Virus record (IMG/VR): IMGVR_UViG_3300028840_008160
Span: 62,001-126,000 of that record
DNA length: 64,000 nucleotides
Strand: one strand, 5' to 3'
In this document: positions 10,565-26,478 of the stretch, piece by piece
How positions within the stretch are numbered: position 1 is the stretch's first letter
Layout of the letters: every line of letters begins with the position of its first letter
The notes under the pieces: generated by a model
Database searches by the model: none
What the model was told of the DNA's origin: nothing
The model's input: only the letters and a program-made list of their open reading frames with translations
Position numbers and translations under genes: made by a program

Positions 10565-10992
10565 GAAAGACAGTGATGTTGTTTGGAGTGATTGTTTTGG
10601 CTATGGTTGCTTGTGTATTTGCTGAATCAACAGCAGTTGTTGACACGTTGACGACGACTGTTGATACATTGATTAATAAGACTAGCGATATAGTAGAAGC
10701 AATTGGTGGATTAAAAGCTGGTGATGTAACAATTTGGATTGTTATGGCTGCAGTAATTAAATTATTGATATCTTTGATGAAGTTTAAACCTGTAGCTAAA
10801 CTGCTTGATTCACCGAAGGCTAAAGCAATTAAGCCGTATATTGCATTAGTATTAGGCATAGCCGGAGGATTTATTACTAGTATGACTACAGGACAAAATC
10901 TTGTGACTAGTTTAATTGCCGGTGTTACTGCAGGATTAGGTGCAACTGGCTTACATGAAGTTACAAAGTCAATAAGGAAAAAGAATGGATGA
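10561..10992 (+). CDS. Holin-like membrane protein with signal-peptide-like N-terminus
   Basis: AGGAGG RBS; hydrophobic segments; holin-type C-terminal G..AGL.ATGLHE followed by a basic tail (KSIRKKNG). Confidence 0.6.
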   Translation: MRKTVMLFGVIVLAMVACVFAESTAVVDTLTTTVDTLINKTSDIVEAIGGLKAGDVTIWIVMAAVIKLLISLMKFKPVAKLLDSPKAKAIKPYIALVLGIAGGFITSMTTGQNLVTSLIAGVTAGLGATGLHEVTKSIRKKNG

Positions 10993-11395
10993 TAAGCCGA
11001 AGATTATTGCGGTTGATTTTGACGGCACGATTGTAAAGCCTGAAGATGATCCGCATTTATTAACTGATTTTACTCTTCAGCCATATGCTAAAGAAGTGCT
11101 CGCATGGATATACGAGCACTTCTTTTCTATATTATGGACGTGTCGAGAAGATGACGTATTACAAAATGCGCTTAATTTTCTCGATAGAAATGATATTAAG
11201 TTTCATGCAGTAAATGAGAATGCGCCATTTCTTGATTTTGAAACATCTGATAAAATATATGCTGATTTTTATGTTGATGATAGAGCAGGTATTGGCATTG
11301 ACTGGTTAGCCATTCAAAGTTATTTGAGAAAGAAATTTTTAAAGCCCATTAATTGCGAGAAGATTATTCGGCAAGTAATAATTGAGGTAAAATGA
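10985..11395 (+). CDS. HAD-superfamily phosphatase (capless, phage/BT0820-like)
   Basis: Motif I IAVDFDGTI; motif II ILWTCR; K in SDKIYAD; motif IV YVDDR. Confidence 0.85.
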   Translation: MDDKPKIIAVDFDGTIVKPEDDPHLLTDFTLQPYAKEVLAWIYEHFFSILWTCREDDVLQNALNFLDRNDIKFHAVNENAPFLDFETSDKIYADFYVDDRAGIGIDWLAIQSYLRKKFLKPINCEKIIRQVIIEVK

Positions 11396-14157
11396 TACGC
11401 TTTCAAAGTTATTCACCTGAAAAGAATGCAGTAGGTGTATCAAGAACTTCGCCTATATATTTCGAGATACGTAATGACGGGACAGTAGCTGACAAAACTA
11501 CGCTTAACGTGACGGTTGATGGAAATAATGTTATAGTTAATGGTGTGTTTCAAGCAGGTTATGCTGGAATAATTGACGATCATACTCGAGGATATAATGT
11601 TTACATAACACAAAACTTACCATTTGCACAAGGTTCTGATATTGTAGTTACGATAAATATTAACACTGAGTTTAACGATGTCTATTCGTTTACAATAATC
11701 ACATCTGATGTTACTGCTCCGGTGACAATTGCTAATCCCAGAGGCAGTACATATGCTTCTGCACAGGATGTACAATTATTGACTAATGAACCAGCTACGA
11801 CTTACTATACTATTAATGGATCACTACCTAGTACATCATCACTAGTGTATTCTGCGCCCATACCAATAACAGAAAACACTATATTACGATTTTTTAGTGA
11901 AGATTCTGATTCAAACACTGAATATATTCATACTGAAATGTATGTTATTGATATACAGGCGGTTGATACTAACGCGCCAATTACTACTCCAAATATTGCT
12001 GGTGGAACATATCATGTATTAAGTTCAATAATTTTGACAGCAGATGAACCGTCTACTATCTATTGGACGATAAATGGTCAAACTCCAACTGTTAATTCGT
12101 ATGATGGTAAAGACACATCGCCTGTAACAATTCAATTGCAACAAGGAACAACTGTTTTAAAGTTTTTTGCAGTTGATGATCATGGAAATGAAGAAACTGT
12201 AAAATCTGAAACGTATATAATTGATCCCAGAGAAAACAACATAGTTCCAAAAAATGTGTTTGTGAGCCATCCATATATCAAGAATACGGTTGATATTTGC
12301 TGGGATGACATGACGCCGATTGAATCTGATATTGTAGGGTATAATGTATATCGATCGCAAGTTGATGGTCAACAACTTATGGATTTAGTATCACATGATA
12401 CACTTACTTCTGAAGATGTATACACAAAAGAGCCAGGTACGTTTGTCAAAATTAATAACCAACTCATAACTGTGCCGTTTTATCGTGATCAACAATTAGA
12501 TAGAATCGTAACGCAAGAAGATGTGTCTGAACAATTTAAGTTTAAGACATTGGCTGATGCAGCAACTGATTTTAGTGGTCAAATTGTAAATGCTGACTAT
12601 TGGGAAGCTATTGATCCGGATCGATTGTTTAATCAGTCAGATGGTATTCATTTTACTGATGTTTATGGTGGAAGTAAAGAAGCTTATTTTCAATCAAAAT
12701 TCAGAATGCGTAATGATTTTGAGATTGAAACAGCATATGAACAAATTGTATGGCCGGTGACAGATAATATTCGTCAAGAAGAAATGGCCTTTATTATTGC
12801 TGTAAATCAGTATACGTGCATTGAATTATCACGTATTAGACGCGAAGCCTATGATTATTATGTAAGTAGATTAATAGTGAATTCGCAAGAAATAAGTAAA
12901 GTTGAAACACAGACGATGGATTCAAAAGGACAAATAAAAATTGTTCGTTATGATAGCAATGTTTCAACATATTATTATGATGGGATAAGCTGGGTATTGT
13001 TAGAATCATATTTAAGTTTTTCTCGAGATGATTTGCAAGTAAGATTTTATGCTGTAAGTGCAGATAAACCTATTGATGTATTGTTTTCGTATTTTCACAT
13101 TAATTCAGGTAATGCATATTTGCCGTTATTAAAAAATGTTGATGGTCAGTATTGTATTCAAACACAACATAAACCAATTATAGGAACAGATGATAAAGAA
13201 TATACTGATAGTATTAATGAAGTTGAAGTCATTATTGATGGCCAAGTTGCTTTAATTGATAGAGTTGATGGTTTAAAAGGAACAATCATTCTTAAGACAG
13301 AGCGAGAATTTGATTATGTATTGGACAAATGGATTGAACCTGTTATTCCAACGCCTGAGTCGATTGCGACCGTGACTTATAAGTATAGATTGGCAGAGCT
13401 TAAGTTAAATTTACGAAGATTTCCTCATTATAAAGTTACTGCTGTACTTAGTAATGGTAGCGAAACAAGATTGTCATGGTGTACGTCTGTAACATTACAA
13501 TCTGAGAAATTAGACTATATGTATCGAGAAGCTATTAGAAGAAATGCTTGGTTGTTAGATCAAGCTGGTGAACGTGTCTTGTTGTTTATTAAGAAAACAA
13601 CAGGTGAAAGATGTCAGTGTTATAGATTAAATCAACGAACTCATAAACAACCAAAAGTTGGCAGTTGTTTAGAGTGCTGGGGCACTGGATTTATTGGCGG
13701 TTATGTTGGTCCGTTTGAAATAAAGATTTCACCGTTTCAGGCTGAACAAAAAATTACAATGACAGATCGCGGAATGCATCTTGACAATGTTGAAGATACG
13801 TGGACGACAATAACACCAGTAATAACACAGCGTGATTTTATTGTTCGTAGGAACGGTCAAATATATGCAATAGGTCCTGCTGCTAGACCTGAAGTTAAAG
13901 GTGAACCTACTCAACAACATTTTTCTGTAGAACACGTTGATTCAACAGATATACGATATAAATTTGTACAGTCATTAAATTTGTATGGATATCAGGATAG
14001 AGTTGGATTGAGAAAGGGTACAGATCATTATACTGAAAATCCAATAATTACAGATGGTGAAGTGACTGAACATGACAGACAACGCACTGATAAAGGACCG
14101 ACCGTAACTAATGTTAAAAGAGGTCGAACAATAACATTTGAGAACACGCTTTACTAA
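11392..14157 (+). CDS. Head-closure/neck protein fused to surface-type Ig, chitobiase-C/Fn3-associated and FN3 domains
   Basis: C-terminal GERV...RCQC...CLECWGTGFIGGY zinc motif plus a beta-barrel typical of large myovirus neck proteins. N-terminal SP..NAVGVSR (SbsA-Ig-like), two APVT..P.G.TY...YYTINGS.P units and FN3 (GYNVYRS...YKVTAV). Confidence 0.65.
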   Translation: MIRFQSYSPEKNAVGVSRTSPIYFEIRNDGTVADKTTLNVTVDGNNVIVNGVFQAGYAGIIDDHTRGYNVYITQNLPFAQGSDIVVTININTEFNDVYSFTIITSDVTAPVTIANPRGSTYASAQDVQLLTNEPATTYYTINGSLPSTSSLVYSAPIPITENTILRFFSEDSDSNTEYIHTEMYVIDIQAVDTNAPITTPNIAGGTYHVLSSIILTADEPSTIYWTINGQTPTVNSYDGKDTSPVTIQLQQGTTVLKFFAVDDHGNEETVKSETYIIDPRENNIVPKNVFVSHPYIKNTVDICWDDMTPIESDIVGYNVYRSQVDGQQLMDLVSHDTLTSEDVYTKEPGTFVKINNQLITVPFYRDQQLDRIVTQEDVSEQFKFKTLADAATDFSGQIVNADYWEAIDPDRLFNQSDGIHFTDVYGGSKEAYFQSKFRMRNDFEIETAYEQIVWPVTDNIRQEEMAFIIAVNQYTCIELSRIRREAYDYYVSRLIVNSQEISKVETQTMDSKGQIKIVRYDSNVSTYYYDGISWVLLESYLSFSRDDLQVRFYAVSADKPIDVLFSYFHINSGNAYLPLLKNVDGQYCIQTQHKPIIGTDDKEYTDSINEVEVIIDGQVALIDRVDGLKGTIILKTEREFDYVLDKWIEPVIPTPESIATVTYKYRLAELKLNLRRFPHYKVTAVLSNGSETRLSWCTSVTLQSEKLDYMYREAIRRNAWLLDQAGERVLLFIKKTTGERCQCYRLNQRTHKQPKVGSCLECWGTGFIGGYVGPFEIKISPFQAEQKITMTDRGMHLDNVEDTWTTITPVITQRDFIVRRNGQIYAIGPAARPEVKGEPTQQHFSVEHVDSTDIRYKFVQSLNLYGYQDRVGLRKGTDHYTENPIITDGEVTEHDRQRTDKGPTVTNVKRGRTITFENTLY

Positions 14158-14194
14158 ATGTTGATAAGTTCTGTAATAAAAAAAGGAGAATCCT

Positions 14195-14677
14195 ATGTCT
14201 TATGTTCAAACAGCTGAAGCAAAAATGAGACAGCAAGAACATGATGATAGAGAAAGATTATTTGACGATCATGATGGTTTTATGTATACGGCTGCATCAT
14301 TTATTAGCGGGAATTATACTATAGATCAAGATGATGCACGAGACATAATGAAGTATTTGCATTTGGATTTAGTAAAAGTATTAGATATATTTCCTAAGAA
14401 TAAAATAGATGAAAATGGCGATATAATCAACATTGTAATGAATGTCGGTGACACTATACAAGCACAGGCTGTTCTTCTTTATAGAGATAGTGATCATATA
14501 GATAAGGATGTAACGGGATATGCCGATTGCGAATGGATTACAGATCCATCGCCGACGACGTTTTTGACAGTGTCTCAAGGTTTGATTACTGCCACTTTAA
14601 CAAGTACTGCTGATGTTGAAGTATATGCTAAAATTGGAGATTTTGAATCGCAAAGAATTAGGATAGAGGTGGCATAA
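14195..14677 (+). CDS. Virion protein with C-terminal Ig-like (Big_2-type) domain
   Basis: AAAGGAG RBS; VGDTIQ.QA...DVT...W.......TVSQGLITA pattern. Confidence 0.55.
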   Translation: MSYVQTAEAKMRQQEHDDRERLFDDHDGFMYTAASFISGNYTIDQDDARDIMKYLHLDLVKVLDIFPKNKIDENGDIINIVMNVGDTIQAQAVLLYRDSDHIDKDVTGYADCEWITDPSPTTFLTVSQGLITATLTSTADVEVYAKIGDFESQRIRIEVA

Positions 14678-15096
14678 TGTATGATAATGGCGTATCAATT
14701 GCTCCAACTAGACGTTTAGGTCAACCGAGAACAAGCATAAATGATCAAGGTCATTTACCATTAGGATCAAAGATTGCAAATGTCAGTCAGAAGTTTAATG
14801 ATGATACAGAAATAACTACAACTAGAACAGTGCATGTTCAAGATCCAGTAGCAAGAAACGAAAACTATATTGATGATCAGCGATTGACACCTGAGTCTAG
14901 AGATTTAGTTGGTAAAAAAGCACCGAATATGCCGACAACTGAATTTGATCAGTCAATTATGAATACTTTTAATGCTAAAACAAATGAAAATATGACATTA
15001 AATGAAGTTAAAGAACGTAAATTATCGTGTTATAATTTGGTTTCATTTCCGTTTACACAAGCAAAACCATTTGAATTGCCATCATGCCAAAGCTAA
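14677..15096 (+). CDS. Hypothetical protein
   Basis: GAGGTGG RBS and TAATG coupling; 139 aa. Confidence 0.55.
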   Translation: MYDNGVSIAPTRRLGQPRTSINDQGHLPLGSKIANVSQKFNDDTEITTTRTVHVQDPVARNENYIDDQRLTPESRDLVGKKAPNMPTTEFDQSIMNTFNAKTNENMTLNEVKERKLSCYNLVSFPFTQAKPFELPSCQS

Positions 15097-15347
15097 GTGT
15101 TAGACGGTTACCATTACGATTTGAGATTGAACAGTCACATAAAGTGAAAATTCATGAAATGCGACGAAAAGCAAAATATGATGTTGCGTTAACATTAGGA
15201 TTACCAATAGAACATAGATTAGTTAATCTAGTTTATGACGCATCGCAAAAACGCGTAAAGATTCTATTAACTAATGATGATGAACTTTTGAAATATAGAC
15301 AAATGCTTAACAACAAATTTCATATAGAGGTTCGTGAATGCAATTAA
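15084..15347 (+). CDS. Hypothetical basic protein
   Basis: 87-aa ORF overlapping both neighbours slightly. Confidence 0.5.
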   Translation: MPKLSVRRLPLRFEIEQSHKVKIHEMRRKAKYDVALTLGLPIEHRLVNLVYDASQKRVKILLTNDDELLKYRQMLNNKFHIEVRECN

Positions 15348-15790
15348 AAATGCGATATCTACATTTCAACTCGTCTGCATTACGAGAAGCTAGAGGTCGC
15401 ATTATTGATGAAACTGCACGTAAAGGTGTTCAAATTTTTAGACAAGAAATAAGAAGAAGAAGGCTTATTAATACAGGTCATATGTTAGATAGTGTTGGTG
15501 CAACAATTAAACGAAATAGTGTAACATTTGACATAAATGCTGATTATGCTGGTATAATAAACGATGGTGTTCGTCGACATAAAATGAGATATTTAGTTGA
15601 TGCAGGACCAATTCCATTAGTTACTAGACGTGGTCGTAAGATTTTTAGAGTTGCAACGCCTTCAAATATAAGAGAACGAGATCGATGGTTACATCCGGGA
15701 TTCAAACGTGGCAAGGGATTCTTTGATAAAAGTGCAGATAAAATTGAAGCTGTTGCAAAAGAGCTTATAATAGATGAAGGTATAATATGA
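15338..15790 (+). CDS. HK97 gp10-like / virion morphogenesis (tail completion) protein
   Basis: Basic protein with NTGHMLDSV (TGxLxxS), YAGIINDG and HPG...FF motifs; neck-region position. Confidence 0.65.
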   Translation: MQLKMRYLHFNSSALREARGRIIDETARKGVQIFRQEIRRRRLINTGHMLDSVGATIKRNSVTFDINADYAGIINDGVRRHKMRYLVDAGPIPLVTRRGRKIFRVATPSNIRERDRWLHPGFKRGKGFFDKSADKIEAVAKELIIDEGII

Positions 15791-15805
15791 ACAATTTAAC
15801 GATTA

Positions 15806-16525
15806 ATGAAGGTATATATGAATGTGCAACTTAATAATGGTCAACTTGGTGATAGAATATGGCATCAGCATACTAGGGCTTTAATGCCAGAGTATGTACG
15901 AGTTATTGGTCGTGTTATCGGCAAAGTTTTTATTCGTGATATCGCTAAAGAAGTTAGATACAATCAAGTTGTTGATATTTTGATAACTGATGCTAAACGA
16001 TCTGATGACTTGGTTAGAGCAATTTCTCAAAAATGGGTTGACATAGTTTACGGAAAAGAATTTTTAGACAAAAAGAAATATTCATCAGAGATTCTACGTC
16101 AACCGTCACAGACGCAATTTGTAACCAATAACGCTAGACAGACTGTTGATTTAAGTGAAGTTAAAGTTTTAGCATCTCAAATTGCACAAGATGCTGCAAA
16201 TAGATCAGTAATGTCAATTAGAGAGTCATTGGATGAATTACAAGAATCAATTAAGAATTCAAAAAGTTCATCAATTGATGTTGACCAAGTTATAAAAGAG
16301 TTGACGACTAAATTGCCACAACAAGCACAAGTCAATGAAAAATCTAAATTTGATGATGAAATTGCTAATAACGTATTTATTAATCTTGACGAACAGAAAG
16401 AGCTAAAAACAAATATACAACAAGACGGTTTGGGGACTGTTACGAAGCGCAAAGGTAAGAAAGCCAAGATGACAATTAAACGATTAAAACATATTAACAA
16501 AGGAGATGGTAATGGAAATGTCTAG
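15806..16525 (+). CDS. Coiled-coil protein, candidate partner of the downstream actin
   Basis: Small N-terminal alpha/beta domain, central coiled coil, basic C-terminal helix; overlaps the start of the actin gene. Confidence 0.6.
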   Translation: MKVYMNVQLNNGQLGDRIWHQHTRALMPEYVRVIGRVIGKVFIRDIAKEVRYNQVVDILITDAKRSDDLVRAISQKWVDIVYGKEFLDKKKYSSEILRQPSQTQFVTNNARQTVDLSEVKVLASQIAQDAANRSVMSIRESLDELQESIKNSKSSSIDVDQVIKELTTKLPQQAQVNEKSKFDDEIANNVFINLDEQKELKTNIQQDGLGTVTKRKGKKAKMTIKRLKHINKGDGNGNV

Positions 16526-17660
16526 CCCTAAGAAAATTCGACGGCATCGATCACGTGAGGAGAAGCGTCAACTTCGTGAAGATACTAATGAAGAGACCCA
16601 AGATACTCAAAAAGTTCAGACACAAGAGGAAGAAAAAGTAGTGAAGGCAAAAGTTAAACGTAGATTTGGTGTAGGTTTAGATATAGGAACATCATTTATT
16701 AATAGAGCGACTATTGATGATGATGACGATATTGATATCAGAACGCAACGAGATGCATTTTTTGATATCGAAAATGATAAATTTGCAAGGAATATGTTGA
16801 CGACAAATAATGCAAATTATATCGTATCTGACGATTCAAAATTATTATATGTAATTGGTCAGGAAGCAATCAATTTCGCTAATGTATTCAAGCGTGAAGT
16901 TCGTAGGCCTCTGCATAAAGGTGTGATTAGTACAAGGGAACCCGAAGCATTATTGATGATTAAGACAATCATTACTAATATATTAGGTAAACCTGTAACA
17001 GAAAATGAAGTTTGTCAATTTTCAGTGCCGGCTGAGCCTATTGATGCAGATTACAATATCATATATCATAGAAACATTTTACAATCGTTTGTCGAATCTG
17101 CTGGATATAAAGCAGTACCGATCAATGAGGCTAGAGCTGTTTGTTATTCAGAATTAGATGACGACGGATTTACTGGTCTTGCTATTAGTTTTGGTGCTGG
17201 TATGGTGAATGTGTCATTAACATATATGGGTGCAGGATCAATTGAGTTTAGTTTGTCAAGAGCAGGTGATTGGATTGATGAGAATGCAGCAAAAGCTATT
17301 GGTGAGAGAGCAACAAAAATGGTTGCTGTAAAAGAAGCTGGTCTTGATTTATTGAAACCAAAAGATAGATATGAAGAGTCAATCAGCATCTTTTATCGTA
17401 ATTTTATAGCATATGTCGTAAAAAAGTTTGAACAGAAATTGTCGCAAACTGAAGATATTCCAGAATTTCCTGAACCTATTACTATTATTTTGGCAGGTGG
17501 AACGTCACTTGTGAAATCATTTGATGTTGTGTTTAAGCAAGAAATTGATAAGATTAAGTTACCGTTTAGAATCAAAGAAATCAAACTAGCTGAAGATCAA
17601 TTATTTGCTGTTGCAAAAGGTTGTCTATATTCTGCATTGTCTGAATACGAAGATGAATAA
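16512..17660 (+). CDS. Actin-fold ATPase, volactin-like family (start 16506/16512/16518 uncertain)
   Basis: Phosphate-1 GLDIGTS, connect-1 PINEARAV, phosphate-2 ISFGAGMVNV, AGDWID, adenosine ILAGGTS, connect-2 AVAKGC. AGGAG at 16501-16505 favours ATG 16512. Confidence 0.88.
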   Translation: MEMSSPKKIRRHRSREEKRQLREDTNEETQDTQKVQTQEEEKVVKAKVKRRFGVGLDIGTSFINRATIDDDDDIDIRTQRDAFFDIENDKFARNMLTTNNANYIVSDDSKLLYVIGQEAINFANVFKREVRRPLHKGVISTREPEALLMIKTIITNILGKPVTENEVCQFSVPAEPIDADYNIIYHRNILQSFVESAGYKAVPINEARAVCYSELDDDGFTGLAISFGAGMVNVSLTYMGAGSIEFSLSRAGDWIDENAAKAIGERATKMVAVKEAGLDLLKPKDRYEESISIFYRNFIAYVVKKFEQKLSQTEDIPEFPEPITIILAGGTSLVKSFDVVFKQEIDKIKLPFRIKEIKLAEDQLFAVAKGCLYSALSEYEDE

Positions 17661-17671
17661 AGGAGGAAACT

Positions 17672-17950
17672 ATGTCGAATTCAGAGAACAAGATTGTTAG
17701 TAAAATTGTAAAAGAAGCTAACATTGGAATAAAGAAACAAGCGAAATTGTTTAATCGCGATGATATCGTGACACTTGTCGACCAAGTACAAGGATTAAAT
17801 AAAGGAACGAATTACAAAGTTATTGATAATTCAAATCCTGGGTATATTACGATTGCTACATTTGATCCGTCTGATAGTGATGATACTATTGGGGAAAGAA
17901 TTGGTGAATTTAGAACTGATAGATTCGTCCATGTCAACGATGTGTACTAA
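17672..17950 (+). CDS. Small hypothetical protein (SH3-like beta pattern after a helical leader)
   Basis: AAGGAGG RBS; 92 aa. Confidence 0.6.
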   Translation: MSNSENKIVSKIVKEANIGIKKQAKLFNRDDIVTLVDQVQGLNKGTNYKVIDNSNPGYITIATFDPSDSDDTIGERIGEFRTDRFVHVNDVY

Positions 17951-17958
17951 GGTTAATA

Positions 17959-19164
17959 ATGTTTTACAGAATAACAAATGTTGTTAAAAAAATTATCATT
18001 CAAGAGTTACAAGAGCTCTTTAAGGATCATCCTGTTTTTAGTGATGAATTAGTTATCACTAATAAGTATTCATTTGAAGAACGTCCAAAATATGCTATAA
18101 TTGTTAAAACAGCATCTGCTAAATCACAAAAACTGTCATTAGATAATTATAAGGGAATTGTTCAATCATATGTTACTTTAGCTAATTTAAAGAACACTCC
18201 TGGTCGCATGATAGAATGGGTTAGAGAAGATGTAGCAAACATAAGTAATGTAGTTAAGCCCGGATTTTATGTTGTTGAAATGGTAGAAGATGATCAATTT
18301 ACAGTGTCTGCTTATCTTACTGTTGCTGATGAAGTGTTAACGATTGAGACGAATGGTTTTGAACATGCTTTTTTACAACATCAAAACATTAATCCTAACA
18401 GTGAATTAGTTTTGACAGAAACTGGTCGAAGATTACAACCTAACGAGCATTATACGATTGATAATAGCACGGGTGAAATTACTTTTTTGCAACCAACAGA
18501 AGATTATGAAACTATTTCTGTTGATTATCAATACATTGGTAATGTTACTGGACCGTTTACTGTTCAACCAGAAACAGTTGATCAATTGGCAATACCAGGT
18601 GTTGTTTTAGCATTTGGTAATTTTTTAAAGAAGGGTGGTTTACAAGTAGTAGTTGTGTATCCTGACAGACAAGAAGTAGCAAAATCATATTTAGGCAAAT
18701 GGAATATGACATTAAGTTTGGGTGCGGTTGCTCAAGACACTGATACACAAGAACAATTGATAGATTTAGCATCTATGTATATATGGTCTGTATTACAAGA
18801 AAAATTAGTTAATGATGGTATATATGTGTCAGAATTTAATATTGGTGGTGAATCTGAAGATGATGAAGTGAAGAGTGCTAATGAATTATCGTATATGGGT
18901 GATTTATCGTTTAATGTTGATGTTGAATGGGAAGCTTTTCAACCAATTCTCGGTGTAATTAAGAACGTGTTTCTTAATCGTGTCGAAGATTTTGGACAAT
19001 ATGATGATGCAGAACATGAAATTAGAAGTAAACGACCGTTTAATATATCGCAAAGAGGAGTTGACTACATGACAGGTTTACAACCTGTTGAAAATTTAGA
19101 TCCTTTCCTGATAAGACCTCTTCCAAAATATACTCTGGTGCAATCAAGCACGCACGTTGGGTAG
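17959..19164 (+). CDS. Putative tail terminator/completion protein with inserted beta domain
   Basis: Alpha/beta pattern (IIQELQELF...ERP.YAIIVK...W.MTLSL.AVAQD...EQLID); last neck-type gene before the fibre and sheath. Confidence 0.55.
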   Translation: MFYRITNVVKKIIIQELQELFKDHPVFSDELVITNKYSFEERPKYAIIVKTASAKSQKLSLDNYKGIVQSYVTLANLKNTPGRMIEWVREDVANISNVVKPGFYVVEMVEDDQFTVSAYLTVADEVLTIETNGFEHAFLQHQNINPNSELVLTETGRRLQPNEHYTIDNSTGEITFLQPTEDYETISVDYQYIGNVTGPFTVQPETVDQLAIPGVVLAFGNFLKKGGLQVVVVYPDRQEVAKSYLGKWNMTLSLGAVAQDTDTQEQLIDLASMYIWSVLQEKLVNDGIYVSEFNIGGESEDDEVKSANELSYMGDLSFNVDVEWEAFQPILGVIKNVFLNRVEDFGQYDDAEHEIRSKRPFNISQRGVDYMTGLQPVENLDPFLIRPLPKYTLVQSSTHVG

Positions 19165-19171
19165 AAAAATT

Positions 19172-19348
19172 ATGAATGATGAACAAATCATTCATGACAT
19201 AGTTCACGAATTGTCAAGTGAAAAGAAAAAACCCACAGGTCATCCGGCAAGTAGGCGTTTGCCCAAAAGAGTATATATGGATGTCGCTATACCGGCAGTT
19301 GGTGACTGGCCAAAATATAGCGATCCCATCAAAAGTCGCGAACAATAA
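19172..19348 (+). CDS. Small hypothetical protein (58 aa from ATG 19172)
   Basis: Track ORF 19157..19348; first ATG at 19172, just after the upstream stop. Confidence 0.45.
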   Translation: MNDEQIIHDIVHELSSEKKKPTGHPASRRLPKRVYMDVAIPAVGDWPKYSDPIKSREQ

Positions 19349-19361
19349 TCATTTCTTTATT

Positions 19362-19381
19362 TTTATACTATTTTTGATAAT
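19362..19381 (+). promoter_or_regulatory. Candidate late promoter motif TTTATACTATTTTTGATAAT
   Basis: In one of the few intergenic gaps; 15/20 identical to the motif at 23653-23672. Confidence 0.35.
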
Positions 19382-19435
19382 TGTATCATCTAGTTTTAAG
19401 GTGAAAAGTCTTTTCATTATTGGGAGTCAGATTAT

Positions 19436-22400
19436 ATGAGTCAACCCTATGTCGGCAATTATTCATACAGCATTAACGATTTAGAGACTAGTTCTAAAAA
19501 GCGTTATTTGATGGCGGGTCAAAAAGGAAAACCCGTTTTAGATGAAGAACTTTCTGAAGTTAATTTCAGAAATTTTGATCTTAAAAGACGCATTTGGGAG
19601 CGTAATGCTGGTGATGCTGCATTGGGTCGTGATTCATTTGAAATTGTCCAAAGTTCAACAACGACTGTTAGTAACTTCACGATAAAAGGTGGGACAGCTG
19701 AAGATCCAGCTGTGCTATTTATACAAGGCTATCCGCTATTACTCTTTGGCGACATCGAATATAATCAACAAAACAATACTGGCGCGTTAACTGATGATGA
19801 CTATACAGAGACATTAATTCCTGGAATAAGTACGCCTACGTCTGATCGCACAGATACAGTTTATGTTGATTGCTATTTAGCCGAAGTTAGTTCTGAAACT
19901 GGCAGTGAATATCAAGATCCAGCGATTAAAGATGCTGTCTTGGGATTACAGACTGCTAATAGGTTTAGAATTGTTCAAGATATACGAGTTGAAGAAGGAT
20001 CAACGACGATACCTATTGACGGTGTTGATGGCAATGGTATATATCATAGATATTATAAGTTAGCAGAACTTGATAGGCATAATGGTGTGCCTGATATTTA
20101 TACAGCTGATATTACTGACATGCGAACAGTTACGACGTCGCTTAAGGAAATATCAAATGGATATGGTGATATTCATGTAAGAAATGCTATTGTCGATAAT
20201 GATCTTGATGTTCATGGCACACTTACAATCATTAATACATCTGAAACTAATCAAGAAAAATTAGTTATCACTTGCAATGACCCTGGCGTTGTTGCAATGG
20301 TAGTTAACAAGTCAGAAAATGGTGATGCAGTTCAAATCAATAAGACATCAGGCACCGGCTATGCATTGATTGTTAACAGCGGTTATGTCGGCATTAATAC
20401 AAGTGCACCATCTGAGGCACTTTTCATTCATCAACAACGTTTGGGCATATTGGGTTCAAATGGCGCACAAATACGTTTGTCTGGAAATGATCATACTGCT
20501 GGCGCTTTATATACAACAAATAACTATCCATTGTATTTAGGTGTAAATAATATAGCTGAAAGAATTGTAATAGCGGCAACAACTGGTTATGTTGGTATTC
20601 ATACTACAAACCCAAGTAACGAATTAGATGTTAATGGTACAATTAGAATTAGAGGTGGATTGCCAGCTGCTGGCAATTTATTACAGTCAGATGCAACAGG
20701 TGTTGGCACATGGGTTAGTCAGTCATCTATTGATGATAATGACTGGGTAGAAAGTGGAAATGATGTTTACTTTAATAAATCAGGCAATGTTGGAATTAAT
20801 ACATCTTCTCCGTCAAACGCTAAACTTGACGTTAATGGTCAAATAAGAATGCGTACAGATGCCGCATCTGGAAAGATTATAATTTCAGATGCAAATGGTG
20901 TAATGAGTTGGGTTAGTCAAACAGCGATTAGTGACGGTGACTGGGTTGTTAGTGGAAGTAATGTTTATAACAACACTGGCAATATTGGCATAGGCACTAG
21001 CAACCCAACAAAGAAATTTGCTGTTCAAGCAGCTGCATCTGATGGTATGTATTTATGGAATAGTTCGTCTGCAGAACGAGGAAAATTAGCATTTGATGCA
21101 TCATCAAATGCAGTATTAGAATTAAGGAATGCAGCTGGTAATCCGCAAGTTCTTTTAGATTCTAGCACTGGTGCTAATTATATATTTGCCGGAGATACAG
21201 GTATTGGTACTGCTACTCCTGGTGCAAAACTTGATGTTGAAGGCAATTTTAGAGTACTGAACGGTACAACTATTAATGAGTTTTCAACTGATGGAACATT
21301 AGCAGGTGACTCTGATGACGCTGTACCGACTGAGAAAGCTGTCAAAACATATATTGATCAATATAGTCATTGGATTAAAACGTCGACAACAGTGCATTTA
21401 CAAACAGGATCTAATAATGTTGGTATAGGTACTGCATCATCGACATATAAATTAAGAGTAGAAGGCACATCATATTTGAATGGTTCAACTGATATTAAAG
21501 GTGATTTGACAATTACTGATCAGGATTCTACTGATGTTATTGTTAAAATGTATGATAGTGGTGATGATGGTGTTATTGATGTTTATCAAAATAATGCTGT
21601 TACAACTAAAATTCATGGTAATGGAACAAGCTATTTTAAAGGTGGTAGCGTTGGAATAGGAACAGAAACGCCTGCTACAACACTTGATGTTGAAGGTACA
21701 CTTAGAGTATTGAATGGCACGTCAATTAATGAATTTTCAACAGATGGTACAATGGCTGGTGATTCAGACGACGCTGTGCCAACAGAAAAAGCTGTCAGAA
21801 CTTATGTTACTAGTAATGCTGGTCAGTGGAATAGAATATCATCGGTGTTGTCGCCGAAGACAATAACAGATGGTGTTAGTGTCGGTCAAACTGCCGGAGT
21901 CGCAAATACACTTTCAGTTAATGGTAGAGTATCTGTTACTGGTACTAGCACTACACAATCAGCAATTTATAGTATTGCAGGCGGACCTGGTGCAGCTGTG
22001 CAGGCTGTTCAGGATAATGCAAATGGTTATGCTATTGAATCTAATGCTTCTGATACTACAGGATATATTTTGATTGGTAAAAGTGGTGCAAGTACAAGAT
22101 TTACAATGAGGGGTAGTGGTAATACTCGTTGGGCAGCTGGTGGAATAGCTATAAATGAAGCTGAAGTTTCAACTACTGGTTATTTACAAGCTACTGGTCG
22201 TATAGTATGTACTGGTACTAGTACTACACTAGCAGCAATTCAGGGTATTGGAAGCGGTGGTCCTGGTGTATATGCTATACAAGATACTGCAAGTCGTTAT
22301 GCTATTGAATCTGTTGTTTCTGATGATACAGCATATAATTTATTTTGCAAAAGTGGTGCAAGTACAAGATTTACAATGAGGGGTAGTGGTGATACTCGTT

Positions 22401-23338
22401 GGGCAGCTGGTGGAATAGCTATAAATGAAGCTGAAGTTTCAACTACTGGTTATTTACAAGCTACTGGTCGTATAGTATGTACTGGTACTAGTACTACACA
22501 ATCAGCAATTTATAGTATTGCAGGCGGACCTGGTGCAGCTGTGCAGGCTGTTCAGGATAATGCAAATGGTTATGCTATTGAATCTAATGCTTCTGATACT
22601 ACAGGATATAATTTATATTGCAAAAGTGGTGCTTCACTAAAGCATTATTTAAAAGGTAATGGTGAAGCTTATTTTGATTTTTCAGTTGGTGTCGGAACAA
22701 CACCGCCTGGTTATGGTGGCGCATTTATAGCTGGAACAAGTACAACGAACCCAGCAATGTTTATTTATGGTGTTGGCGGTGGACTGCGTGTTATAGCAAC
22801 TACTGGCGCAGGATTTACTTATGAAGGATGGGACTCAACATTGGGTCGTACATTTACTGTTAGTAATGCAGGTCAAATTAAATCAGATTATGGTGCTGCT
22901 GTATATTCACCCGCTGACTTTGCTGAATGGACTAAGGTTGAAGGAGAATTAAAAAATTATGATTTGGGAACAATAGTTTCACAATCAGATATAGATTTAA
23001 CAGTTAAAGTTGCTGATGATGTTGAAAGTGTTTATGGTATTGTAACAGATAGAGCAACATTTCTAGGCGGTTTGACAGGAGTTGTGAAAAAAGAATATGA
23101 TATTTTAGAAGATCATCAGATTGAACGAAAATTTAATGCCAAAAAAATTGCTATGACTGGTCATGTAGTTGTAAAAGTTATTGGCAATATTAAAGTTGGA
23201 CAAAGGTTGACGTTGTCAAGTATACATGGTGTAGCAAAAGCAGCTAAAACAACTGAAGAAAAAATGTTCGCGTTTGCATTTGCTAGACAAAATTATAATG
23301 CAGATGAAATTGGATTAATTGAAGTACGATTGCTTTAA
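19436..23338 (+). CDS. Fibre/appendage protein with C-terminal intramolecular chaperone (peptidase G2-like autocleavage domain)
   Basis: N-terminal QKGKPVLDEELSE attachment domain; repeated GNVGIGT.SP..KLDV.G fibre units; two INEFSTDGT.AGDSDDAVPTEKAV units; C-terminal ADFAEW...GIVT...GG...IAMTGHV.VKV.G.IKVG..L. Confidence 0.8.
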   Translation: MSQPYVGNYSYSINDLETSSKKRYLMAGQKGKPVLDEELSEVNFRNFDLKRRIWERNAGDAALGRDSFEIVQSSTTTVSNFTIKGGTAEDPAVLFIQGYPLLLFGDIEYNQQNNTGALTDDDYTETLIPGISTPTSDRTDTVYVDCYLAEVSSETGSEYQDPAIKDAVLGLQTANRFRIVQDIRVEEGSTTIPIDGVDGNGIYHRYYKLAELDRHNGVPDIYTADITDMRTVTTSLKEISNGYGDIHVRNAIVDNDLDVHGTLTIINTSETNQEKLVITCNDPGVVAMVVNKSENGDAVQINKTSGTGYALIVNSGYVGINTSAPSEALFIHQQRLGILGSNGAQIRLSGNDHTAGALYTTNNYPLYLGVNNIAERIVIAATTGYVGIHTTNPSNELDVNGTIRIRGGLPAAGNLLQSDATGVGTWVSQSSIDDNDWVESGNDVYFNKSGNVGINTSSPSNAKLDVNGQIRMRTDAASGKIIISDANGVMSWVSQTAISDGDWVVSGSNVYNNTGNIGIGTSNPTKKFAVQAAASDGMYLWNSSSAERGKLAFDASSNAVLELRNAAGNPQVLLDSSTGANYIFAGDTGIGTATPGAKLDVEGNFRVLNGTTINEFSTDGTLAGDSDDAVPTEKAVKTYIDQYSHWIKTSTTVHLQTGSNNVGIGTASSTYKLRVEGTSYLNGSTDIKGDLTITDQDSTDVIVKMYDSGDDGVIDVYQNNAVTTKIHGNGTSYFKGGSVGIGTETPATTLDVEGTLRVLNGTSINEFSTDGTMAGDSDDAVPTEKAVRTYVTSNAGQWNRISSVLSPKTITDGVSVGQTAGVANTLSVNGRVSVTGTSTTQSAIYSIAGGPGAAVQAVQDNANGYAIESNASDTTGYILIGKSGASTRFTMRGSGNTRWAAGGIAINEAEVSTTGYLQATGRIVCTGTSTTLAAIQGIGSGGPGVYAIQDTASRYAIESVVSDDTAYNLFCKSGASTRFTMRGSGDTRWAAGGIAINEAEVSTTGYLQATGRIVCTGTSTTQSAIYSIAGGPGAAVQAVQDNANGYAIESNASDTTGYNLYCKSGASLKHYLKGNGEAYFDFSVGVGTTPPGYGGAFIAGTSTTNPAMFIYGVGGGLRVIATTGAGFTYEGWDSTLGRTFTVSNAGQIKSDYGAAVYSPADFAEWTKVEGELKNYDLGTIVSQSDIDLTVKVADDVESVYGIVTDRATFLGGLTGVVKKEYDILEDHQIERKFNAKKIAMTGHVVVKVIGNIKVGQRLTLSSIHGVAKAAKTTEEKMFAFAFARQNYNADEIGLIEVRLL
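21937..22610 (+). repeat. Near-identical interleaved coding duplications (A-B-A'-B-A) in the distal part of the fibre
   Basis: 21937-22067 vs 22480-22610 (131 nt, 1 mismatch); 22079-22229 vs 22349-22499 (151 nt, 1 mismatch). Confidence 0.92.
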
Positions 23339-23619
23339 TGGAGATGCAGATGATAGTAATATTAAGTTTTATTCGAAAAACGACAATATTAAAGAATGTG
23401 TCTATTGCACAGATGACTGATGGCAGTTTGAAAAGAAATTTTTATGACAAAGCTGAATTAGTTTCTGTTATAGATAGTATTCCTCCACCTGCTGGAGCAG
23501 ATACTGTGTTATATATTAAATGTGGTTGTGGTAGAGAGTATCTTTGGACAACTACGGATGATATTCCTACGACTAATTTTGATTGCGTTTGCGGCCAGAA
23601 AGTAATCGAATATGGATAA
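23338..23619 (+). CDS. Small zinc-ribbon-like protein (CGCG...CVCG); start may be 23350
   Basis: Two CxC pairs; GGAG at 23340-23343. Confidence 0.55.
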   Translation: MEMQMIVILSFIRKTTILKNVSIAQMTDGSLKRNFYDKAELVSVIDSIPPPAGADTVLYIKCGCGREYLWTTTDDIPTTNFDCVCGQKVIEYG

Positions 23620-23715: not shown

Positions 23716-26478
23716 ATGGCAGCATTTGTATCAGGCTATCTTGCGCCGGGTGTATATGATAGAACTCTCTTGGACCCCAATGTCGCTAGTTTAATTGGTG
23801 GACTAAGAATTCCTGTCATAGTTGGAACGGCTAATGAAGAAAAACTTCTTTTGAATCAGGATATGATTCGTGGGTCATCAGCATCTGTTGATAATAAAGC
23901 ATCTAATGAAGATTTATCATCACAAGCTGATGGTTCTAATACTGTATTCCAAGTTTTGTATTACCCAATTGTTACAGGCGAAGGTTCAGGTATAGTTACA
24001 AGTCGTGTGTCAGATGTCATTGTAAGTGTGAATAATCAGCCAGTACCAGTTGTTAGAGTTGACGGATTGAATGGATTAGTGACCACACAGCTTCCGCCAA
24101 AAGACAATGATACAGTCACTATTACATATTATTTTAAGTTGACTGATACTAAGATTGACAATGAAGATGTTTCTGCTCAAGCTGATGGTTCAAATGTGTT
24201 GTTCTATACTGCTCATAAACCGATAGTTGATGGTCGTGGTAGTGGAACGCCTACTACTTCAATAACAGATGTTGTTGTTAAAGTAAATGGTTTGTTAGCA
24301 AATATATCTGAAGTTAGTGGTATTGAAGGAACTGTTACATTGTTAACTGCTCCAGCTGGTGGAGCTACTGTGACAGTGTCATATTGGTTTAATGAGCATT
24401 CAGACACTTTTGACTTGTTGCCTCAAGACAAATTGACAACTGTTATTCAGGTTGGTGATTCGCCTGATTTAGCAAACTATGTTGAAGGTGTTGACTTTAT
24501 CATTCTTGATGGTAATAAAATTCAATGGGGCGCTGGATATAAGATTGACATTATCACTCATACTACAGGTGCTGTGTATTTTGAAGATCAAATTTCAGTG
24601 CTTCTTGTTGACGATCATATTATCAAAGAGGATGTTTCTAGTCAGTTTACTGGTGTCGAGAATTCATGTGTCGTTACTTATCTACCAATTGTTGACGGTA
24701 ACGGCCGTGACATTATTACTTATGATCCACAAAAAGTCAAAGCATACATTAACGACGTTGAGACAACAGTTATTAGGGTTGACGGTGCAACAGGAACCAT
24801 TTATTTGTCAACAACACCGTTAATTACTGATGTTGTTGAAGTCTCATATTACAGAAATGAGATGATTGACGAAACGTATGCTATTGCTGTTGTTACAGCT
24901 GGTATTGCTGGAACTGGCACATATAAAGTTTCAACGCAGATTCAAGGTTCGCTGTATCATGTGAAGATGACTAACTATACGACAACACCTACACCGACGT
25001 TTATGTCATCGGTTGGTGCGTATACTAAGACTAGTAAGAATAAAGCTGTAGATGAAGTAGTAACGTTGACTTTTACAAGTGCAACTGAATTTACAGTGAC
25101 GTCTACAAATGGTTCTGGATCTGGTTCTGGAGCAACAACTTCAGGAAAGACAGGTCATACTTACATCGATGCAGTTACCGGATTGCAGTTTACTATTACA
25201 CCTGATGGGACTTATCAAGTAGGTGAAACTATTGAACTTACTAGTCATAATGATGATGTTCCTGGTACAAGAACTGGTGGCCCTGGAACTGGTGATGCTG
25301 GCCCATTTGAAACAGGTGTGTCGGAAACTGTTTATACTGTGCCAGGTATCAGATTGATTGTTACTGACACAGAGAATACTGCATCAGGTGACACAACAAA
25401 TGTTCAGACATATGATAAAGCTGGTAATGAACCTGTTGTTGGATCGACGTATTACATGAGTTACTATTATGAAAAGACTGATTATACGCCGAAGATTTTC
25501 ACAAGGTTCAAAGATATTACGTCTGAATATGGAAACATGGACATTGGCAACCAAATCACATTAACAGCATTCTTGATGATGATTAACGGTGCTGTAGCTG
25601 TTATGTGCAAGCAAATTCTTAAAGAGCCAGGTGAACAAATAGCTGCTGATCAGACGTACATTCTTGCTCTTAAAGAACTTGAGAAGCCAGTTAGTGGTAT
25701 TAGACCAAGAGTAATTCATCTTTGTACCACTTCTTCGTCAGTTATTTCTGCTCTTAAGACACATTTAGCTCAAATGTCTTCAGAACGTCGTCGGTCTGAA
25801 AGAACAGCATTTATTGGCTTTGCTGTTGGGACTGAACCTCAGGATGCTGCGCAATTTGCTCGATCACTTAGTTATGGCCGTATTGTTGCAGTTTATCCTG
25901 ATGGTGCAGTTGTTGCATTAACTGACGAACGCGGCGTTGAATCTGAGTACATCGTTGATGGTAGTTATATGGCTGCTGCTATGGCTGGATTGAATGTTAG
26001 CACAGCTTATGATGTAGCCGAACCAATGACTCGTAAGACAATCACTGGTTTCAAACGGCTTATTCGTGCTATGGACGATGTTGAAATGGATGAGGCTGCT
26101 GCTGCGGGTATCACTATTATTGAGGATCAATCTGGTATCATGAAGATTCGTCATGCACTGACGACTGATATCAGCAATCCATTTAATAAGGCACCGAACA
26201 TCATCACAATCATGGATGAAGTTCAAATTCAGGCTAGAAATGCACTAGACCAGTACATTGGTAAGAAATTCTTGCCGAATACGCCTGGTGATGTTATTGG
26301 TACTCTTGCAGCTACACTGTCTGCTCTTAAGGAAGGTGAAATTATTTCTGATTATGCTAACGTTACAGCTGAACCTTCCGACTTTGATCCTAACTACCTT
26401 GTATGTGAAGCATACTACAAGCCAGTGTTTGAATTGTCGTATATCAGGGTGACTTTCAATATTAGAGCGAAGCTTTAA
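23716..26478 (+). CDS. Tail sheath protein with inserted surface domains
   Basis: N-terminal YLAPGVY; C-terminal sheath core (ERTAFIG, YMAAAMAG, EPMTRK.I.GF, GITII, IRHALTT, YIGKK, YKPVFELSYIRVTF). Confidence 0.92.
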   Translation: MAAFVSGYLAPGVYDRTLLDPNVASLIGGLRIPVIVGTANEEKLLLNQDMIRGSSASVDNKASNEDLSSQADGSNTVFQVLYYPIVTGEGSGIVTSRVSDVIVSVNNQPVPVVRVDGLNGLVTTQLPPKDNDTVTITYYFKLTDTKIDNEDVSAQADGSNVLFYTAHKPIVDGRGSGTPTTSITDVVVKVNGLLANISEVSGIEGTVTLLTAPAGGATVTVSYWFNEHSDTFDLLPQDKLTTVIQVGDSPDLANYVEGVDFIILDGNKIQWGAGYKIDIITHTTGAVYFEDQISVLLVDDHIIKEDVSSQFTGVENSCVVTYLPIVDGNGRDIITYDPQKVKAYINDVETTVIRVDGATGTIYLSTTPLITDVVEVSYYRNEMIDETYAIAVVTAGIAGTGTYKVSTQIQGSLYHVKMTNYTTTPTPTFMSSVGAYTKTSKNKAVDEVVTLTFTSATEFTVTSTNGSGSGSGATTSGKTGHTYIDAVTGLQFTITPDGTYQVGETIELTSHNDDVPGTRTGGPGTGDAGPFETGVSETVYTVPGIRLIVTDTENTASGDTTNVQTYDKAGNEPVVGSTYYMSYYYEKTDYTPKIFTRFKDITSEYGNMDIGNQITLTAFLMMINGAVAVMCKQILKEPGEQIAADQTYILALKELEKPVSGIRPRVIHLCTTSSSVISALKTHLAQMSSERRRSERTAFIGFAVGTEPQDAAQFARSLSYGRIVAVYPDGAVVALTDERGVESEYIVDGSYMAAAMAGLNVSTAYDVAEPMTRKTITGFKRLIRAMDDVEMDEAAAAGITIIEDQSGIMKIRHALTTDISNPFNKAPNIITIMDEVQIQARNALDQYIGKKFLPNTPGDVIGTLAATLSALKEGEIISDYANVTAEPSDFDPNYLVCEAYYKPVFELSYIRVTFNIRAKL

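Follow-up and report, generated by a model that had tools for sequence, protein, structure and literature searches.

A volactin-family actin and its candidate adaptor encoded among the head-tail joining genes of a jumbo phage

Phage-encoded cytoskeletons are so far known from two cases, the PhuZ tubulin of the nucleus-forming jumbo phages (Chimalliviridae), which positions the phage nucleus and delivers capsids (PMC8314001, PMC9067925), and a few actins of the ParM/Alp type that move DNA, of which AlpC of prophage CGP3 is the precedent for a phage-encoded actin (PMC4446434, PMC5539076). Virus-encoded actin-fold proteins of other kinds are the viractins of giant eukaryotic viruses, which are eukaryotic-type actin-related proteins of Nucleocytoviricota (PMC8850707), and the closterovirus Hsp70h, a chaperone with a substrate-binding domain; neither belongs to the volactin family. 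Volactin (VolA, HVO_2015; Pfam PF25216) is an actin of Haloferax volcanii that forms dynamically unstable filaments in vivo, touches the membrane by the filament tips and is a cell-shape factor (PMC10869688), and a CdpA-like protein with four transmembrane segments, HVO_2016, is encoded next to volA (PMC12126565). We analysed a 64,000-nucleotide stretch of DNA (the window), positions 62,001 to 126,000 of the IMG/VR record IMGVR_UViG_3300028840_008160, which is part of a 329.8-kb contig of a contractile-tailed phage. The window encodes a volactin-family protein and a small adaptor-like partner in the middle of the head-tail joining genes, an arrangement that is shared by hundreds of uncultured large phages and for which we found no published description. 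The features discussed below are as follows.

11392..14157 (+), 921-aa decorated neck/connector-like protein, w921, the upstream edge of the conserved block
15338..15790 (+), HK97-gp10-like/Neck1 (tail completion) protein
15806..16525 (+), 239-aa volactin partner (candidate adaptor), whose 3' end overlaps the volactin start
16367..16522 (+), C-terminal tail motif of the partner (residues 188-239)
16500..16505 (+), Shine-Dalgarno sequence AAGGAG serving the volactin start at 16512
16512..17660 (+), volactin-family protein with a predicted actin fold and inferred ATPase activity, 382 aa (alternative in-frame ATG at 16506)
16512..16667 (+), charged N-terminal extension, predicted to be disordered (residues 1-52)
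16680..16691 (+), phosphate-1 motif D57-I-G59-T60
17127..17129 (+), E206, the invariant Glu of P-I-N-E
17187..17210 (+), phosphate-2 motif in its volactin-specific form, S226-F-G-A-G-M-V-N233
17265..17279 (+), G252-D253-W-I-D256 motif
17496..17507 (+), adenosine motif G329-G330-T331-S332
17672..17950 (+), 92-aa small protein
17959..19164 (+), 401-aa neck/tail-terminator-like protein, w401
23716..26478 (+), tail sheath

The volactin open reading frame spans 16506-17660 (384 aa), and its likely start is the ATG at 16512, which lies 6 nt after the AAGGAG Shine-Dalgarno sequence and is the start used in the public gene call (P0001, 382 aa). A preliminary description made from the sequence alone had judged this protein to be more like volactin than MreB, FtsA or ParM, and our analysis supports that judgement. 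All of the family-type strings on which that description relied are present in the translation (TQRDAFFDIE; AINFANVFKREVRRPLHKGVIS; FSVPAEPIDADYNIIYH; PINEARAVCYSELDDDGFTGLAISFGAGMVNV; FSLSRAGDWIDENAA). The match to the Pfam Volactin profile PF25216 is far beyond chance (E 3.5e-80, 270.3 bits against a cut-off of 35) and extends over residues 56-377 and profile positions 3-321 of 321, while Pfam MreB_Mbl reaches only 27.7 bits (cut-off 27). The scores against the NCBIfam models of MreB (PRK13927, 25.7 bits against 293; TIGR00904, 20.1 against 365.75) and MamK (NF040964, 26.4 against 400) are far below their cut-offs, as is the score for FtsA, and there are no mreCD or magnetosome genes nearby. 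In a phylogenetic tree the volactin family separates from E. coli MreB and FtsA with 99% SH-aLRT support, and the window protein sits inside it, in a viral clade nested among bacterial and haloarchaeal volactins, although this was a quick LG+G4 tree with a long outgroup branch. The protein is 38-40% identical to the haloarchaeal members compared, which are megaplasmid paralogues that served as proxies for VolA itself.

The actin-fold motifs are those of the family. G59 and T60 are invariant and D57 nearly invariant in the comparisons designated A1 and A2, and they align with D-L-G-T of E. coli MreB; E206 is invariant in A1 and A2 and aligns with the conserved Glu of MamK (S-E-P); G252 and D253 are invariant (MreB has G-D-R-F-D here), and so are G329, G330 and T331, which align with G-G-G-A of MreB. 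The phosphate-2 motif is different, in that S226, G228, G230 and N233 are invariant, and M231 nearly so, across viral, bacterial and haloarchaeal members, where MreB has D-I-G-G-G-T-T-E. The family thus has Ser in place of the phosphate-2 Asp of MreB, actin and ParM, and nucleotide hydrolysis may therefore work differently. Considered together, the signature motifs (D-x-G-T; N/V-E; S-x-G-x-G-M-x-N; G-D-W/F-[IV]-D; G-G-T-S) are all present in the window protein and are invariant or nearly so in A1, A2 and a further comparison, A4, including three haloarchaeal members.

The AlphaFold2 model of the protein is confident (pLDDT 89.2, pTM 0.84), and its top Foldseek matches among solved structures are MreB (1jcf, 7zpt, 4czk), the MamK filament (5ljv, TM 0.74 on the target, rmsd 3.7), BeeR, FtsA, actin and crenactin. 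The family has no close relative among solved structures, the nearest PDB matches by sequence and by fold being MamK and MreB at under 21% identity (16-20%); the PDB sequence match to MamK has an E of about 3e-4 and covers residues 114-271 only. The predicted fold is not the tubulin/FtsZ fold of PhuZ, so any likeness to that system is functional only. The charged N-terminal extension of about 50 residues noted in the preliminary description does exist, but it is predicted to be disordered (pLDDT below 50 for residues 1-20 and 26-44), varies in length and sequence among relatives and is absent from many, and so is unlikely to be central.

These comparisons also bear on the possibility that the protein is a non-filamentous assembly factor for the neck or tail, or is packaged and ejected with the DNA, by analogy with closterovirus Hsp70h, which is an actin-fold ATPase built into the virion tail. 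The position among neck genes and the high conservation of the gene (below) are compatible with this, jumbo phages are likely to package many non-structural proteins, and the nearest viral folds in the BFVD library are Hsp70 homologues, including closterovirus Hsp70h. However, those Hsp70 matches have only 13-16% identity and target TM values of 0.32-0.38, and the BFVD result (identity 9-16%) reflects the absence of bacterial-type actins from that library. Against solved structures the best 50 matches are filament-forming actins and actin-related proteins, with no Hsp70 among them, the 382-aa protein has no substrate-binding domain, and the same cassette exists in cells that have no virions (below). 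We consider this alternative improbable.

The gene is carried by a virus, as the window also encodes a tail sheath (PHROG 2839, E 1.5e-29; Pfam Phage_sheath_1C), a tape measure protein, Baseplate_J and Neck1. The flanking genes are as the preliminary description proposed, a gp10-like gene on one side and a tail-terminator-like gene on the other. The upstream 15338-15790 gene product matches Pfam HK97-gp10_like (PF04883, 24.1 bits against a cut-off of 21.4) and PHROG 5, "tail completion or Neck1" (E 4.8e-8). A profile of w401 found nothing among PDB sequences, and only the fold comparison was informative; its AlphaFold2 model (pLDDT 79) matches the neck of phage 812 (8qkh_G, E 2.2e-10), the necks of E217, Pa193, Sf14, XM1 and Pam3, the A-1(L) gp7 terminator and λ gpU. 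Farther upstream, w921 has Pfam CHB_HEX_C_1 and Fn3_assoc domains in its N-terminal part, and iterated profiles found its conserved C-terminal core in 78 of 88 viral loci and 0 of 81 cellular loci; the structures returned for it by the ESM Atlas resemble head-tail attachment, minor capsid and T4 neck proteins, but this is a lead only.

At least 575 IMG/VR contigs encode relatives. In the viral loci that could be compared, a gp10 homologue lies within 3 kb upstream of volactin in 42 of 64, a homologue of the partner within 2.6 kb upstream in 61 of 68 (abutting in 52 of 80), a w401 homologue within 3 kb downstream in 63 of 79 and the sheath within 10 kb downstream in 55 of 70; the whole order (partner, volactin, terminator-like gene, sheath) is present in 36 of 48. 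None of 81 cellular loci has gp10, w401 or sheath homologues. In two large phage clades the cassette is fixed inside the neck block in the order connector-like protein, gp10/Neck1, partner, volactin, terminator-like neck protein, sheath. Conservation of the position among neck genes, on which the preliminary description had made its reading depend, was therefore upheld. Volactin has diverged in step with its neighbours (Spearman 0.83 with w401, 0.70 with the partner, 0.68 with gp10 and 0.58 with the sheath) and is the more conserved gene in 95-100% of locus pairs, with a median identity of 49% against 33, 19, 23 and 39%, respectively. The neck position is not obligatory, since a small viral clade (loci L017, L032, L064, L083 and L086) keeps the cassette outside structural genes, and conserved gene order can be simple operon inheritance that need not mean a functional link to the neck. 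The cassette could thus be a passenger that was inserted once at a permissive site in the structural operon, but passengers are usually patchy and fast-evolving, whereas this gene is retained across clades whose neck proteins share only about 30% identity and is more conserved than the sheath in 95% of locus pairs, so we regard a passenger role as very unlikely.

The upstream 239-aa protein has no Pfam, PHROG, NCBIfam or PADLOC match, a search of the ESM Atlas returned only unnamed viral clusters at chance-level scores, and no fold or target is recognisable in its N-terminal part. It nevertheless belongs to a family-wide class of partners found next to volactin genes in phages, Planctomycetota and haloarchaea, a finding that goes beyond the preliminary description, which had only proposed that the actin acts with its upstream partner. 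Alignment of viral and cellular partners shows that only a C-terminal tail of roughly 50 residues is shared, the rest differing between groups; in the window protein this tail has the form F-I-x-L ... L-K-T-N-I ... followed by a basic amphipathic K-M-T-I-K-R-L-K-H-I-N-K-G. A profile built from viral tails alone retrieved 45 of 5,919 ORFs in cellular and haloarchaeal loci, 37 of them adjacent to volactin on the same strand. In haloarchaea the partner is the "CdpA-like" membrane protein DUF7139, which carries V-D-x-x-V-x-G-L-[KR]-x-L-[KRQ]-G-G. These haloarchaeal partners have the same architecture as the CdpA/CdpA-like membrane anchors (HVO_0739, and HVO_2016 next to volA; PMC12126565), with an N-terminal multi-pass membrane domain, an acidic disordered linker and a short conserved C-terminal part. 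The phage partner shares only the C-terminal tail motif and has no membrane segments, so it cannot be a membrane anchor of that kind. Binding of the tail to volactin is inferred from adjacency alone, and no partner-volactin fusion was found among the 56 long family members examined, which are tandem volactins, insertions or unrelated N-terminal domains.

An actin-like ATPase encoded beside a small adaptor with a conserved C-terminal tail appears to follow the logic of ParM/ParR, and, since AlpC and its adaptor AlpA move viral DNA in prophage CGP3 (PMC4446434, PMC5539076), the partner might be a DNA-binding adaptor that couples phage genomes, or replication and packaging sites, to growing filaments; the basic N-terminal extension of the window's volactin could also bind nucleic acid. 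Several results make this unlikely. Volactin is a different actin family, no iterated non-coding repeats are present in 14000-24000 and no tandem array in 10000-28000 apart from coding repeats in the fibre gene, and no DNA-binding domain is detectable in the partner by Pfam, PHROGs, NCBIfam or the ESM Atlas, although the absence of a match does not exclude one. In addition, the cassette sits in the late structural block and not with replication genes, the haloarchaeal partner is an integral membrane protein and not a DNA binder, and only 5 of 72,556 plasmid records carry a relative, all of them haloarchaeal megaplasmids, unlike true plasmid partition actins.

We favour, with a probability of about one half, the interpretation that the partner and the actin form a late-expressed adaptor-plus-filament system that organises virion assembly, an inference for which there is as yet no experimental or transcript support. 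In this view the cassette is transcribed with the late structural operon; the volactin start overlaps the end of the partner gene and has a strong Shine-Dalgarno sequence, so its translation is probably coupled to that of the partner (a scan for sigma-70-type promoters and intrinsic terminators showed no excess over shuffled sequences, so operon boundaries could not be set). The actin would bind ATP and polymerise into dynamic filaments, as published for Haloferax VolA, and the tail peptide of the partner would dock on the filament in the way ParR does on ParM, while its other end would anchor the filament, to the membrane in haloarchaea and to a phage structure in the phage. The tail motif gives a concrete candidate for what volactin filaments attach to, including in the case of HVO_2016. 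The system would then position or move virion parts (filled heads, tails or whole particles) in the infected cell, as an actin-based functional counterpart of the PhuZ spindle, though PhuZ is not encoded in the neck module and has no known tail-peptide adaptor. A more speculative extension, which we think doubtful but which is compatible with the data, is that a volactin filament held by an adaptor through a short C-terminal tail peptide is an ancient two-part module of archaea, bacteria and viruses, which a major lineage of huge myophages has made a core late gene pair of the neck operon and uses to bring heads and tails together or to arrange finished virions; this would be the first cytoskeletal system tied to tailed-phage virion assembly.

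It is also possible, but in our view rather unlikely, that the phage protein forms or invades a host volactin-type cytoskeleton late in infection and changes cell shape, size or envelope organisation, for example by enlarging or stiffening the cell or blocking its division to make room for very large virions, without handling virions directly. VolA is a cell-shape factor, cellular volactins are widespread in Planctomycetota and other bacteria, and the phage clades branch beside the Planctomycetota clade, which is compatible with capture from a host and with co-assembly; because the tail motif is shared, a phage partner could in principle dock on host filaments, or the reverse. On the other hand, the phage keeps its own dedicated partner, and the phage volactins form deep, exclusively viral clades that co-diverge with neck genes. 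The window protein sits in an all-viral clade of 8 (support 99), there is a second all-viral clade of 51 (support 98), and a single clade holding all neck-module phage volactins is not rejected (p-AU 0.73). Repeated host capture is not seen, the fixed place between Neck1 and the terminator is not explained by this reading, and the window's G+C content of 33-40% is probably low for most Planctomycetota, so a volactin-bearing host is not established. A close relative filed in a Nitrosarchaeum MAG looks like mis-binning.

A megablast search with 14 kb around the gene found nothing among 50,697 phage records, and a tblastn search of these records found only two, both unannotated huge phages and neither of them cultured. 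The stretch with volactin and its flanking genes stands in one contig, without differences, in two public DNA runs, although these may be one data set filed twice. Searches of PHROGs, PADLOC and NCBIfam gave no family for volactin, the partner, the 92-aa protein or w401, so defence and anti-defence readings have no support. The 92-aa protein, encoded between volactin and w401, also has no Pfam match, and its homologues are present in only 11 viral loci, all of which belong to the window's own phage clade.

The window carries an ORF at 16506-17660 on the + strand in which three in-frame ATGs follow an AAGGAG sequence at 16500-16505; the ATG at 16512 is the best spaced of the three, and it is the start used in the public gene call P0001 (382 aa). 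All of the amino acid strings on which the preliminary description based its assignment of this protein to the volactins are present in the translation. The Pfam Volactin model (PF25216) matches it over the model's whole length with an E-value of 3.5e-80 and 270 bits, while MreB_Mbl reaches only 27.7 bits. By sequence, the nearest solved structures are MamK entries (E about 3e-4), and the NCBIfam models for MamK, MreB and FtsA are missed by an order of magnitude in score. An AlphaFold2 model built on 63 relatives has a mean pLDDT of 89.2 and a pTM of 0.84, and only residues 1 to about 50 are disordered in it. The 50 best matches of this model among solved structures are MreB, the MamK filament (TM 0.74 on the target), BeeR, FtsA, actin, Arp and crenactin; there is no Hsp70 or sugar kinase among them, so the protein does not group with the non-polymerising actin folds.

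In alignments of 20 and 63 family members, and of eight sequences that include three haloarchaeal proteins and E. coli MreB, the following are invariant or nearly so: D57-x-G59-T60 (phosphate 1), E206, G252-D253-W-I-D256, G329-G330-T331-S332 (adenosine) and G370. The phosphate-2 motif has a family-specific form, S226-x-G-x-G-M-x-N233, where MreB has D-I-G-G-G-T-T-E. The haloarchaeal members share this form, so it is a trait of volactins as a family and not a defect of the phage copy. The Asp at this position probably takes part in metal and water coordination in actin, MreB and ParM, and the manner in which volactins hydrolyse nucleotide is therefore an open point. The family also includes tandem double-volactin proteins (about 730-750 aa), forms with an insertion of about 350 aa near profile position 220, and forms with unrelated N-terminal domains.

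The window equals part of IMGVR_UViG_3300028840_008160 (329.8 kb), and all of its large ORFs are on the + strand. Its annotated genes include a tail sheath (PHROG 2839, E 1.5e-29), a tape-measure protein, tail/lysin proteins, Baseplate_J and a gp10/Neck1-like protein. The genes in the neighbourhood of the volactin gene that are considered here are as follows:

11392-14157, a 921-aa connector-like protein with Ig-like decoration domains
15338-15790, the gp10/Neck1-like protein
16506-17660 (+ strand), the volactin-family ORF
17959-19164, a 401-aa protein (w401), predicted to be a terminator-like neck protein
19436-23338, a 1300-aa fibre-like protein
23716-26478, the tail sheath

The 401-aa protein just downstream of the actin gene has no sequence-level family, but its model (pLDDT 79) matches chains of solved myophage and siphophage necks, namely those of phage 812 (E 2e-10), E217, Pa193, Sf14, XM1 and Pam3, as well as the A-1(L) gp7 terminator and lambda gpU. 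The TM-scores are low because the protein has several domains, and we read these matches as indicating a neck protein of the terminator type and not as proof of a precise role. The conserved core of the 921-aa protein upstream resembles head-tail attachment domains in the ESM Atlas, which is a lead only. This protein and the sheath share a domain of about 100 aa (BLASTP E 1e-6), which caused their iterated profiles to cross-hit. The fibre-like protein between the terminator-like gene and the sheath has a 270-nt tandem coding repeat (21937-22632, 2.6 copies) and shorter repeated G-I-G-T...L-D-V-x-G units, and it matches only PHROGs of unknown function. The volactin gene thus lies inside the head-tail joining block, as the preliminary description stated.

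A word-indexed protein search gave 560 relatives; close ones (64-85% identity) lie on contigs of up to 151 kb, and more distant ones (40-55%) come from very large contigs and from MAGs of Planctomycetota, Acidobacteriota, Patescibacteria and DPANN archaea. An exhaustive HMMER scan of 1.84 billion cluster representatives found 1,074, 722 and 343 clusters at E-values up to 1e-3, 1e-10 and 1e-30, respectively. Of the 80 best, 15 are longer than 200 kb and the largest is 497 kb. GTDB species genomes hold at least 586, and the best 80 are almost all Planctomycetota; volactin is very common in the MAGs of that group, usually with a coiled-coil partner directly upstream. Among 50,697 deposited phage records only two uncultured huge phages (485 and 595 kb) have it, and BFVD has nothing like it. 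A 58.7-kb contig filed under a Nitrosarchaeum MAG (JAUSEY010000114.1, GCA_030650065.1) is syntenic with the window, including volactin (75% identity) and the sheath, but this is probably a phage contig binned by its low G+C rather than evidence for an archaeal host.

We called ORFs in 88 viral and 81 cellular loci and searched them with iterated profiles of the window's neighbouring proteins, including the 239-aa product of the gene immediately upstream of volactin (the "partner").

Neighbours of volactin in informative viral loci, excluding the window's own contig.
Neighbour; position relative to volactin; loci
Terminator-like protein (w401); starts within 3 kb downstream; 63 of 79
Terminator-like protein (w401); starts within 600 nt downstream; 51 of 79
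Sheath; within 10 kb downstream; 55 of 70
Partner; within 2.6 kb upstream; 61 of 68
gp10-like gene; within 3 kb upstream; 42 of 64
Whole order partner, volactin, w401, sheath; 10 kb available on both sides; 36 of 48

The position of the gene among the neck genes is thus conserved. Some of these loci are near-duplicates, so the counts are not fully independent (66 viral sequences remain after collapsing at 85% identity). No cellular locus has a gp10, terminator-like or sheath homologue.

Across viral locus pairs, volactin identity correlates with that of the terminator-like protein (Spearman 0.83), the partner (0.70), gp10 (0.68) and the sheath (0.58). Volactin is the more conserved protein in 95-100% of pairs, with a median identity of 49% against 33, 19, 23 and 39%, respectively, which indicates strong constraint; this level of conservation weakens the possibility that it is merely a passenger gene. 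In a tree of 123 sequences rooted on E. coli MreB and FtsA the family is one group (99*), and its main groups are the window's all-viral clade of 8 (99*), a second all-viral clade of 51 (98*), a Planctomycetota clade of 41 (99*) and a small viral clade, most of whose members lack structural neighbours. These four meet in an unresolved node, and the haloarchaeal and assorted other bacterial sequences branch outside it. This was a quick LG+G4 tree with a long outgroup branch, and two viral rows, LR756511.1 (595 kb) and our locus L080, are very divergent volactins on long branches with neither recognisable neck neighbours nor a partner hit; their placement is unreliable. Holding all neck-module phage volactins together as one clade is not rejected (p-AU 0.73), and a single old capture is therefore possible but not shown.

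The partner gene overlaps the start of the actin gene, and we infer that the translation of the two is coupled. Its profile hit 75 viral loci and also 20 cellular loci; in the latter the hits were nearly always the ORF abutting the volactin gene, and they matched the C-terminal half of the profile. The alignment shows one shared element, a tail of about 50 residues whose consensus is roughly F-I-x ... L-E-[SN]-N-[LI] ... G-[VI]-x-x-x-L-x-[KR]-[LM]-K-x-L-[KRQ]-G-G, and the rest of the protein varies. As a cleaner test, a profile built from the last 70 residues of 67 viral partners only was run against 5,919 ORFs of the cellular and haloarchaeal loci. Of 45 hits at E-values up to 1, 37 are directly adjacent to volactin on the same strand, whereas with roughly 70 ORFs per locus chance adjacency would be a few per cent. 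The viral loci whose volactin is not among structural genes also keep an adjacent ORF ending in this motif, and we conclude that the partner is family-wide.

In three haloarchaeal megaplasmids the upstream neighbour is a membrane protein with three hydrophobic segments, an acidic linker and V-D-x-x-V-x-G-L-[KR]-x-L-[KRQ]-G-G; its membrane domain is Pfam DUF7139. Haloarchaeal volactin genes are preceded by this DUF7139 membrane protein (haloarchaeal loci L170 3791-4690, L171 3917-4825 and L172 3971-4894), and its acidic tail carries the same motif as the phage and bacterial partners, which gives a concrete candidate for the membrane anchor of VolA filament tips. Two published points fit with this: VolA filaments span the cytoplasm and touch the membrane only by their tips (PMC10869688), and a CdpA-like four-TM protein, HVO_2016, lies next to volA, which the authors noted only as a hint (PMC12126565). 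We infer that the tail is the actin-binding element and that the variable remainder sets where the filament is anchored, much as the tail of ParR appears to act on ParM, although no fusion proteins support this, none of the long family members examined being a fusion with the partner.

We also infer, without direct evidence for any of these steps, that the pair is expressed late together with the structural genes, that the actin polymerises in a nucleotide-dependent manner, and that the partner's tail couples it to a phage structure, with a role in positioning or joining virion parts. Remodelling of host shape is an alternative, but the deep viral clades and the dedicated partner weaken simple host mimicry. 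A DNA-positioning system of the AlpACS or ParMRC kind is another; no centromere-like repeats were found in 14000-24000, no DNA-binding domain was detected in the partner (although the absence of a match does not exclude one), and plasmids almost never carry the family, which weakens the partition reading. A packaged protein or a non-filament chaperone is a further possibility.

Volactin was named in 2023-24 and has been discussed only for Haloferax. The phage actins known so far are AlpC and the Bacillus phage or plasmid-prophage Alps, and the viractins of giant viruses are eukaryote-type (PMC8850707). The 2020 huge-phage survey, whose data set includes the two GenBank hits, mentions PhuZ but no actin, and in a literature search that did not cover most subscription journals we found no paper on volactin in phages, on its abundance in Planctomycetota, or on the partner motif. 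The system described here differs from these phage-encoded cytoskeletal polymers in that the putative polymer belongs to a different family, lies in a new genomic setting, and is accompanied by a newly recognised class of candidate adaptor.

Just upstream of the neck block, a 146-aa ORF (10124-10564) has a sub-threshold match to nucleoside 2-deoxyribosyltransferase-like proteins (28.5 bits against a cut-off of 30). A 434-aa protein with Phage_endo_I-like and helix-turn-helix domains (38890-40194) sits inside the tail module and may be a nuclease or a mobile insertion. An 1891-aa protein (46552-52227) is packed with ASH / HYDIN / Cep192-type (PapD-like) Ig domains (E 3e-53), which is unusual decoration for a phage tail or baseplate region. 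Finally, one reading frame is open from 57793 to the end of the window at 64000 (more than 2,069 aa); this is a giant gene that runs off the end, and its text resembles the Ig-decorated proteins upstream.
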